A DNA stretch of 64,000 nucleotides from Orbicella franksi (GCA_964199315.1 OZ116711.1:4650001-4714000); one strand, 5' to 3'; positions 48,613-50,640 are shown, counted from the first letter of the stretch. The notes: a model not told the origin generated them from the sequence alone. Translations and numbers: made by a program.

Positions 48613-50640
48613 ATGTCTGGTCGCGGCAAAGGGAAAGCAAAGGGCACTAAGTCCAAGAGCCGCTCATCCCGAGCAGGGCTTCAGTTCCCAGTCGGTCGTA
48701 TCCACCGTCTTCTTCGCAAAGGCAACTATGCTGAGCGTGTTGGCGCCGGTGTCACAGTGATATGTGTATCCCCGTGATATGTGTATCCCCGCACACATAT
48801 CACTAGTGATATGTGTATCCCCTCCAAAATGGCGACCAGTGATATGTGTATCCCCCACCCCCCTCCCCTCTACTTTAAAAAGCAATATCCTCCTTGAAAG
48901 CGCTCTCGTCGTCCGGTCGCTTACTGGACGAACGACTAACCCAAACAGGCTTAAAACACAAATCTCAATTTTTGTAGTTGAAAAAGTTTACGTATCTGCT
49001 GCTGGAATTGTGTTCTTGATCCTAACTGGTTTTCTGCGAGCAGGATATAATGAATTTAAAGTTGAACACCAAATGGATCTAGATATATTTCAATTTGAGT
49101 TTCACGGCACCGGATTTCTAGGACGATATTAATTGCGCGGTTCGACGCGGTGCATTCTCACCCCTCGAGTAACGCATATTCTCCACTGTTCATCGCCTTG
49201 TTTGCATCTGAATTATTCGTGGAGTGAAGCACATATCACGGCTTCGACCCGATCGCCATAAAATGATTAGTGGCACTCGTGTATCCCCTGCACCCGCTTA
49301 TCAGTTCGACTTTTTGTAAGATATGTTAAGTCTCAAGCTGTATTAACATTGCTATACTGCGAATATTGCTAGCACGTTTCATAATATTCGACGTTTATTC
49401 TTCGGCAGTTAGCCTAGATTACGGCTGTCTTCAGGGGATACACATATCACTGCGCCATGTAATAATTAGTGATATGTGTATCCCCTGCATGCGGTCGGCG
49501 ACGGTGTACAAGCGAGGTCAGTGAAACTCCAGAAATCCCAAGCTATGAATAAATGCCGGGTGTGAATATTTCTAGCAAGCCAGTTTTGACAATGCAAATG
49601 TTATGGGCATTTTTCTTCTTGGGTAGAAAGCCAATATAACAGCTGTGTCCATGGGGATACACATATCACTAGTTCATGAAATAATCAGTGATATGTGTAT
49701 CCCTTATTATCCCGTGCACGCGTGCACGCGTTTTTAGTGGAATTATCGAGTTTCAAACTTCAGTGAACCCAAGCCGTGTAAAAACGTCGGGTGCTAATAT
49801 TGCCTGCAGTTTTGACAAGGTTGATGCGCTATATTATAACAGTTGTGTTTCTGGGGATACACATATCACTGCGCCATGAAATAATTAGTGATATGTGTAT
49901 CCCCTGCACGCGATTTCAGTTTAGATATTTAGACATTCGAGTTGCAAACTCCGCAAACCTCAACCTGGGTATAAACGTCGTAGCGAGTAAGCAGCCAGCA
50001 CGTTTCGGTAATAATTGGCCATTTTCTTCGATCAGGTAGATAGCCAATCTAACGGCTGTGTTTAGGGGATACACACTGAGATCACTGCGCCATGAAATAA
50101 TTAGTGATATGCGTATCCGCTGTTCGAAGTTTTAGTCAGATATACAATCGAGTCGGTTAGAACTCAACCAAACTCAAGAAATCCTAATCTGCTCCGTTGG
50201 GCGCGAATTCATTTCTGGTTTCTTCTACTCTTTACAGCACTCGTCGGAACCTCGCAACCGAGTCGCCATTTTGTTCGTTGAATGCCCAGGCGCGTATCAG
50301 TGTTTTGTGTATCCCCACAGGGGATACACATATCACTAGTGATATGTGTGCGGGGATACACATATTACGGGGATACACATATCACTGTGACACCGGTGCT
50401 CCAGTGTACTTGGCTGCCGTGCTTGAATATTTGAGCGCCGAGATCCTCGAGTTGGCGGGCAACGCTGCTCGTGACAACAAGAAGACAAGAATCATTCCCC
50501 GTCACCTTCAGCTGGCTGTCCGTAATGACGAGGAGTTGAACAAACTGCTTGCCGGTGTCACCATCGCACAGGGGGGTGTTCTTCCCAACATCCAGGCTGT
50601 ACTTCTGCCCAAGAAGACCGAGAAGAAAACCAAAGCTTAA
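48613..50640 (+). pseudogene. H2A: Histone H2A disrupted by a transposon insertion; otherwise intact
   Basis: 48613-48749 joined to 50397-50640 gives 381 nt and a canonical 126-aa H2A (MSGRGKGK...[18 protein letters not shown]...[12 protein letters not shown]). With the insert, the frame stops at 48777. Confidence 0.93.
48750..50392. mobile_element. Non-autonomous Ginger1-like DNA transposon, 1,643 bp
   Basis: TGTCAC...GTGACA termini; 74-bp TIRs (48750-48823 and 50319-50392, one mismatch); CCGG duplicated at 48746-48749 and 50393-50396. TG..CA ends with CCGG-specific 4-bp TSDs are the described Ginger1 signature. No integrase ORF recognised. Confidence 0.82.

Follow-up and report, generated by a model that had tools for sequence, protein, structure and literature searches.

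At positions 48613 to 50640 of the 64,000-nucleotide stretch of the Orbicella franksi genome analysed here (the window), a histone H2A gene is split by a long insertion with CCGG on both sides. This raises the questions of what kind of element was inserted, whether it disabled a working gene, and whether it reached a histone gene by preference or by chance. A preliminary description, made from the sequence alone, had proposed a recent knock-out by a Ginger1-like element, the family of which might settle preferentially in histone genes, their redundancy making them a safe harbour. Here, we analysed the interrupted gene and its neighbours, the copies of the family in the genome, and the candidates for a coding partner.

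The interrupted H2A gene and the inserted element

Both parts of the gene lie on the plus strand. The 5' part (48613-48749) contains codons 1-45 plus two bases, with M1-A45 at 48613-48747, and the 3' part (50393-50640) runs from G46, which begins at 50395, to the stop codon (G...KA*), the insertion lying between codons 45 and 46. In its present state, the H2A frame reads on into the inserted DNA and is closed by a stop codon after 54 residues. When the element and one CCGG were removed and the two pieces were joined via the remaining CCGG, an uninterrupted frame of 126 codons was obtained, with a single residue different from four sister genes. Downstream of it, an intact histone mRNA 3' stem-loop (50659-50704, plus strand) was recognised by the Rfam model RF00032, with a score of 35.3 bits vs a gathering score of 34. 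The locus thus presents the organisation of a replication-dependent H2A gene, that is, an intronless histone-fold frame, once the element is taken out, and then a 3' stem-loop. The four sisters, paralogous H2A genes of the same chromosome, all carry the intact site, which reads GTTGGCGCCGGTGCTCC with one CCGG; therefore, the 4-bp duplication in the window is real. The proposal that removal of the element restores a flawless H2A was borne out by this lesion-free frame and by the four empty sites.

The element, which we annotate as a probable non-autonomous DNA transposon of the Ginger1 type, occupies 48750-50392 (plus strand), and no transposase frame, or any other coding frame, was found along its 1643 bp. 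It is flanked by the left CCGG copy (48746-48749), defined by the sequence and by the single CCGG in the four paralogous empty sites, and by the right one (50393-50396), defined by the sequence. The order at the junctions is GTTGGCG-CCGG-TGTCACAGTGATATG...CATATCACTGTGACA-CCGG-TGCTCCAG. The termini of the element read TGTCACAG...CTGTGACA, and the outermost bases, TGTCA...TGACA, were the same in the window element and in every full-ended copy found in the genome. The left terminal inverted repeat (TIR; 48750-48823, plus strand) and the right one (50319-50392, minus strand) are 74 nt long each and differ at a single position (48776/50366). The left TIR is made of repeats of the motif GTGATATGTGTATCCCC, and this end motif of 17-20 nt is repeated in both TIRs and again in an internal array (49430-50128). 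The array consists of four repeats of about 210 bp with spacings of 219, 200 and 216, each of them including a head-to-head pair of end motifs (GGGGATACACATATCACT, 16 nt, AGTGATATGTGTATCCCC). The anatomy previously assigned to the insertion, with TG..CA ends, 74-bp TIRs with one mismatch and a CCGG duplication, was right in coordinates and structure. An inverted-repeat search returned a longer match (81 nt at 98%), as it also took in the palindromic CCGG together with three flanking bases.

The mismatch between the two TIRs was considered as a family trait and rejected, the T at 50366 being a derived change of the right end present in two copies only, that of the window and one other. The latter, on C7, is only about 96% identical to the window element, and the two copies probably share this change by coincidence. 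A Transib/RAG-like element, with a CACAGTG tip and a 5-bp target-site duplication (TSD), was also rejected, as three nucleotides precede the heptamer at the tip here (TGT-CACAGTG) and the TSD measures 4 bp.

Copies, targets and age of the family

The family was followed along the whole assembly (497 Mb, 805 contigs). The terminal 24-mer of the element, with 0 matches in 100 shuffles of the window, gave 97 forward and 95 reverse matches in the genome, and the reversed control pattern gave 0. At least 40 full-length copies showed 97-100% identity to the window element, two further copies that were fetched were about 96% identical to it, and the count of ends led to an estimate of about 100 copies in total. 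A group of five same-strand copies was detected at C14:15.9-17.1 Mb, separated by 250-330 kb, all of them at 97% and with the same end defect; these were probably spread via segmental duplication and not by five insertions.

The target duplications were tallied on 33 copies with both ends. Identical 4-bp flanks were present in 22 of them, corresponding to CCGG in 14 cases (64% of the matched duplications), CCGC/GCGG in six, TCGG in one and GAGC in one. Thus, CCGG leads, as had been anticipated, with other 4-mers in 8 of the 22, and CCGT was found on single flanks only, never as a matched pair. Since the direct flanks CCGC, GCGG, TCGG and GAGC are not palindromic, they represent a duplication of the target, and a mere lengthening of the TIRs would not account for them. 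In a few copies, one end is longer by 5 nt (ACAGG), which hides the CCGG there. Genome-wide, 56 exact junctions of CCGG plus a family end were counted. The bias extends beyond these four bases, in a palindromic form oriented by the element (A-N-T-G-CCGG-C-A-N-T), with T at position +4 in 13 of 19 cases and A at position -4 in 10 of 19.

Three mini copies, of 78 bp each, include only the two outer ends of the element and show their own CCGG or CCGC duplication (L066, C2:4286552; L067, C5:18261819; L068, C7:15956332). About 39 nt per end may be sufficient for movement, or else the mini copies may be the products of deletions in place. These copies also bear on whether the element could be the solo LTR of a retrotransposon, as LTRs likewise start with TG, end with CA and make duplications of 4-6 bp. 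However, the matches listed include no two same-orientation copies at a distance of a few kb, as a pair of LTRs would show, and the 74-bp inverted ends, together with ends-only copies that have duplications of their own, are typical of cut-and-paste movement. We consider a solo LTR excluded because of the missing direct pairs among those matches and of the mini copies. An artefact of assembly at the junctions, for its part, would not place a precise duplication of CCGG right at the termini of a family, and that either of these two explanations accounts for the locus seems extremely improbable. In 20 sequencing runs from 10 studies, under several coral labels, each run contained 0.57-0.64 of the words sampled from the stretch; with 0.70 of the sampled stretch belonging to the element, this share fits the presence of the family and is silent on the junctions.

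Regarding age, the window copy showed four differences from its nearest relative (C2:21895885) and seven substitutions with respect to the majority of 30 copies, three of them private and one of these corresponding to the TIR mismatch. In addition, the two copies of CCGG at the insertion, each containing a CpG, remain unaltered. We therefore agree with the earlier view of the insertion as recent, on the basis of the four differences and of the intact CCGG copies, in the sense that it is young but not necessarily brand new.

The host histone unit and the choice of target

The interrupted H2A has as divergent partner an H2B gene (47940-48311, minus strand) with an intact frame of 123 codons. The other two genes of the unit are pseudogenes. 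That of H4 (51732-52145, minus strand), delimited by alignment to an intact sister unit, shows ACG at the start codon, a 2-bp deletion that causes a frameshift and a 3-bp insertion, and the promoter region upstream of it, common to H4 and H3, has been replaced or deleted. That of H3 (52410-52812, plus strand), identified from the sequence and by alignment to the sister unit, has lost K4 and Q5 through a 6-bp deletion and presents a 2-bp frameshift near 52572 and several amino-acid changes; half of its 3' stem-loop is deleted. In the sister unit (L032, C14:4445300-4449000), all four core histone genes are intact.

In addition to these lesions, the H4 pseudogene contains a 92-bp palindromic MITE (51794-51885, termini TAGCCTGCGAACGCAG...) between two copies of a 9-bp duplication, CATCCATGG, at 51785-51793 and 51886-51894. 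This MITE is missing from the sister unit and belongs to an abundant family (685 first-look candidates), in which the best full-length match reaches 88%; the family seems to be older than the H2A insertion. Identities of 77-88% were obtained for the other short copies of the MITE family, and the 47-nt ends recur, at about 96%, in longer elements.

Our reading of these data is that the host unit was decaying before the insertion, with H3 and H4 already dead. H2A and H2B, in turn, looked as if they were still under purifying selection when the element arrived. The H2A of the window showed 10 fixed differences with respect to all four sisters, nine at third codon positions and one amino-acid change, and the three differences that the outgroup assigns to the branch of the window itself are all silent. 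Similarly, the H2B protein is the same as that of the sister unit, with DNA differences at about 10 places. As both genes seem to have been still under selection, what the insertion put out of action, and recently so, was probably a functional gene, although a redundant one; this spare H2A would have been expressed before. Hence, the knock-out claimed in the preliminary description stands as regards the frame, which is cut to 54 residues, and has to be toned down as regards its target, which was a spare H2A in a unit with its H3 and H4 already dead.

Alternatively, the H2A could have been non-functional at the time of insertion, the element being then one more lesion in a dying unit, with nothing knocked out. 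The two pseudogenes, the loss of promoter and stem-loop parts and the old MITE in the same unit are in line with this, as is the H2A-H2B spacer, a promoter region several indels apart from that of the sister unit. However, the H2A frame shows no lesion once the element is removed, nine of its 10 fixed differences are silent, its stem-loop scores above the Rfam threshold, and the H2B protein has not departed from that of the sister. An H2A already dead on arrival is thus possible but doubtful.

The target was spare in the sense that about 18 dispersed H2A copies, 85-96% identical, were found in the genome, most of them at 3.8-6.4 Mb of the chromosome of the window. The main tandem histone array is located on another chromosome (C10:602401-732912) in units of about 6 kb, and the DNA identity between its H2A and the window and dispersed copies is no more than 79%. 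At the position corresponding to the insertion, the main-array H2A reads GGCGCAGGTGCT, without CCGG. This array is organised in two head-to-head blocks, and the protein encoded by its H2A has an N- and a C-terminus unlike those of the dispersed copies.

The idea of a safe harbour, according to which the family would prefer histone genes as redundant sites through their GC-rich, CCGG-dense coding DNA, was correct in its premise. The histone coding DNA of the window contains 1-2 CCGG sites per 137-411 bp vs 1.23 per kb overall, about four times the density of the window. The preference itself did not hold up: no histone-like DNA was found within the 1.5-kb flanks of any of the 29 other copies inspected, no other family end was located inside a histone unit among the matches listed, and the main array offers no CCGG at this site of H2A. 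By a rough estimate, histone genes account for a few hundred (about 0.1%) of the approximately 600,000 CCGG sites in the genome; chance alone would therefore produce about 0.1 histone hits per about 100 copies, and the one observed is that which drew attention to the family. In favour of an association, the copy at C1:30732301-30733920 sits 5.4 kb from an orphan H2A (C1:30726586), when roughly 0.04 neighbours within such a distance would be expected by chance. We take this copy as a weak hint of histone association, and a preference of the family for histone genes as very improbable.

The reading that we favour, and hold to be quite probable, is that of a young non-autonomous transposon of the Ginger1 type that landed by chance in a redundant H2A of a half-dead unit, with no targeting of histones. 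In the mechanism that we propose, a transposase provided in trans, presumably of the Ginger1 kind, would bind the 17-20-nt motif that recurs in the two TIRs and the internal array, would cut at the TGT...ACA ends, and would insert the element at a CCGG opened by a 4-bp staggered cut, the duplication of CCGG resulting from repair of the gaps after joining. One such event would have separated codon 45 of H2A from codon 46, leaving the frame of 54 residues, and the landing would be a matter of chance, at one of the many CCGG sites of the genome. The insertion would have been tolerated because the H2A gene was redundant.

The search for a coding partner and the relation to known transposons

Genome-wide patterns of the 24-, 28- and 32-nt ends were used to search for an autonomous partner with the same ends, such as the preliminary description had envisaged. 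Among the matches listed, no element with these ends and an integrase ORF was found, nor any pair of family ends at 3-7 kb that could be taken as a coding candidate. One pair at 3.2 kb (L031) enclosed no long frame, and another pair at 5.3 kb, on C11, was rejected as it turned out to be an ordinary copy carrying a foreign insertion of 3.65 kb. The 20 unpaired ends that were fetched all run on as the same non-coding element, and every copy inspected lacked coding capacity. Protein searches with OTU, Ulp1 and the coral integrase+OTU transposase gave no match between ends of the window family.

The foreign element on C11 (L028+L038, C11:1584307-1587958) lies inside the TIR of a copy of the family. 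It has inverted ends of its own (TATGGCAAGC...) and a 6-bp duplication, TTGGAG, and contains broken integrase-like frames (DGFSRRI...VDHGVEN...NQRIERLWRD).

Two frames with Ulp1 (L080 and L081) were also rejected as partners, as they are not integrases. The first of them (L080:1630-4677, C8:13033129-13036176) encodes 1015 aa with a DFAENY-type DDE-like region and a C-terminal Ulp1 protease domain, and is enclosed by 279-nt inverted repeats; it belongs to a transposon superfamily other than that of the window element.

The genome is rich in TIR elements that encode an integrase with OTU, which were the only integrase-type cut-and-paste transposases found in our genome searches. Three such families, of 4.4-5.0 kb, were sampled (L037:1471-6342; L039/L076, C10:17347535-17352510; L040/L077, C3:11020145-11024551), and the transposase frame of L037, of 906 aa, showed rve and OTU domains (Pfam). 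Like the window element, they have ends starting with TG and TIRs made of repeated short motifs. They differ from it in their end motifs, with termini TGTTC, TGTTG or TGTTA, in the absence of DNA similarity between the window element and the integrase+OTU transposase, and in their duplications, which are of 5 bp (CACCT, CCGTG, GGCGG, plus two others whose copies differ by a transition) and not specific for CCGG; in one of the families, termed C, the length may be 6 bp. In the regions upstream of six integrase+OTU families, the end motif of the window family was absent. These 5-bp duplications also depart from the published rules for Ginger1 (4 bp) and Ginger2 (6 bp).

In the published outline of the superfamily, Ginger1 elements have 5'-TGTNR...YNACA-3' termini, TIRs of 40-270 bp and a 4-bp TSD, which is CCGG in 75% of cases and CCGT/ACGG in 24%, and their integrase resembles that of Gypsy (H2C2, DDE, GPY/F) and ends in an OTU or Ulp1 tail, their diversity being greatest in Hydra (Bao, Kapitonov and Jurka 2010, PMC2836005). 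The Gypsy-like integrase and the CCGG/CCGT duplications that the preliminary description had given for Ginger1 agree with this outline. The coral family coincides with it in its 4-bp TSD, CCGG core, TGTNR ends and TIR length, and the assignment to Ginger1 made earlier is supported by its ends, TIRs, TSD and target preference, and left incomplete by the failure of the searches described above to find a Gypsy-like integrase partner. As the integrase+OTU elements sampled in the same genome make 5-bp duplications, membership in Ginger1 is probable and not proven.

The element might instead be moved by another transposase, or by an undescribed lineage of integrases other than Ginger1. The searches without a coding partner, the 5-bp duplications of the sampled integrase+OTU families, the non-integrase nature of the two Ulp1-bearing frames checked and a minor target class of CCGC rather than CCGT would be in agreement with such an origin. 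However, a 4-bp TSD, a strong preference for CCGG, ends of the TGTNR form and TIRs of 74 bp are combined in the way described for Ginger1, and GingerRoot and Ginger2 are set apart by their duplications of 6 bp. On balance, an origin outside Ginger1 seems unlikely to us. We know of no other superfamily that has a 4-bp CCGG TSD, TGTNR ends and a 74-bp TIR together.

A more elaborate version of such an origin, which we regard as quite improbable, would attribute the movement of the CCGG-specific family to a lineage of integrases missing from the assembly or unrecognised in it, distinct from the integrase+OTU elements and reading the 12-bp palindrome A-N-T-G-CCGG-C-A-N-T. In this case, the dispersed histone units would receive a modest excess of insertions, since 12-bp sites would be available in their coding DNA, within open, S-phase-active chromatin.

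For the assignment to Ginger1, which we retain as probable, the closest relatives to be compared are GingerRoot and Ginger2/TDD. These are integrase-related and, like the window element, cut-and-paste transposons with TIRs. GingerRoot occurs in corals too and favours GC-rich targets, but without a sequence-specific target, and both differ from the window family in their TSD, of 6 bp vs 4 bp.

On the side of the host, the locus resembles the birth and death of orphan histones, as its four genes form a dispersed unit that has diverged from the main tandem array and has decayed in part, other genes staying intact. It differs in that its last lesion is a clean, dated transposon insertion with paralogous empty sites, and it illustrates how spare, dispersed histone units decay gene by gene. 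In this sense, the window provides a clean and datable case of a Ginger1-type element disabling a gene of a stony coral, with the paralogous empty sites as proof. The insertion reveals no new mechanism, and the idea of a histone safe harbour fails its first test.

In conclusion, what is new here is a coral family, of a transposon type already known, which adds a non-autonomous coral member to a superfamily known mainly from Hydra. Compared with Ginger1 as outlined in its published description, the coral family has in common a 4-bp, CCGG-led TSD, TGTCA...TGACA termini in accordance with the published consensus, a TIR of 74 bp within the published range, a cnidarian host and the condition of a young, multi-copy family. 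It departs from that description in being non-coding, with no integrase partner found in the genome searches, in its minor target, CCGC/GCGG and not CCGT/ACGG, in the internal array of head-to-head end motifs, and in the palindromic bias around CCGG, for which we saw no counterpart in the published description of Ginger1 targets. Thus, the coral family brings to the superfamily a slightly different target spectrum as well as mini copies made of ends only.
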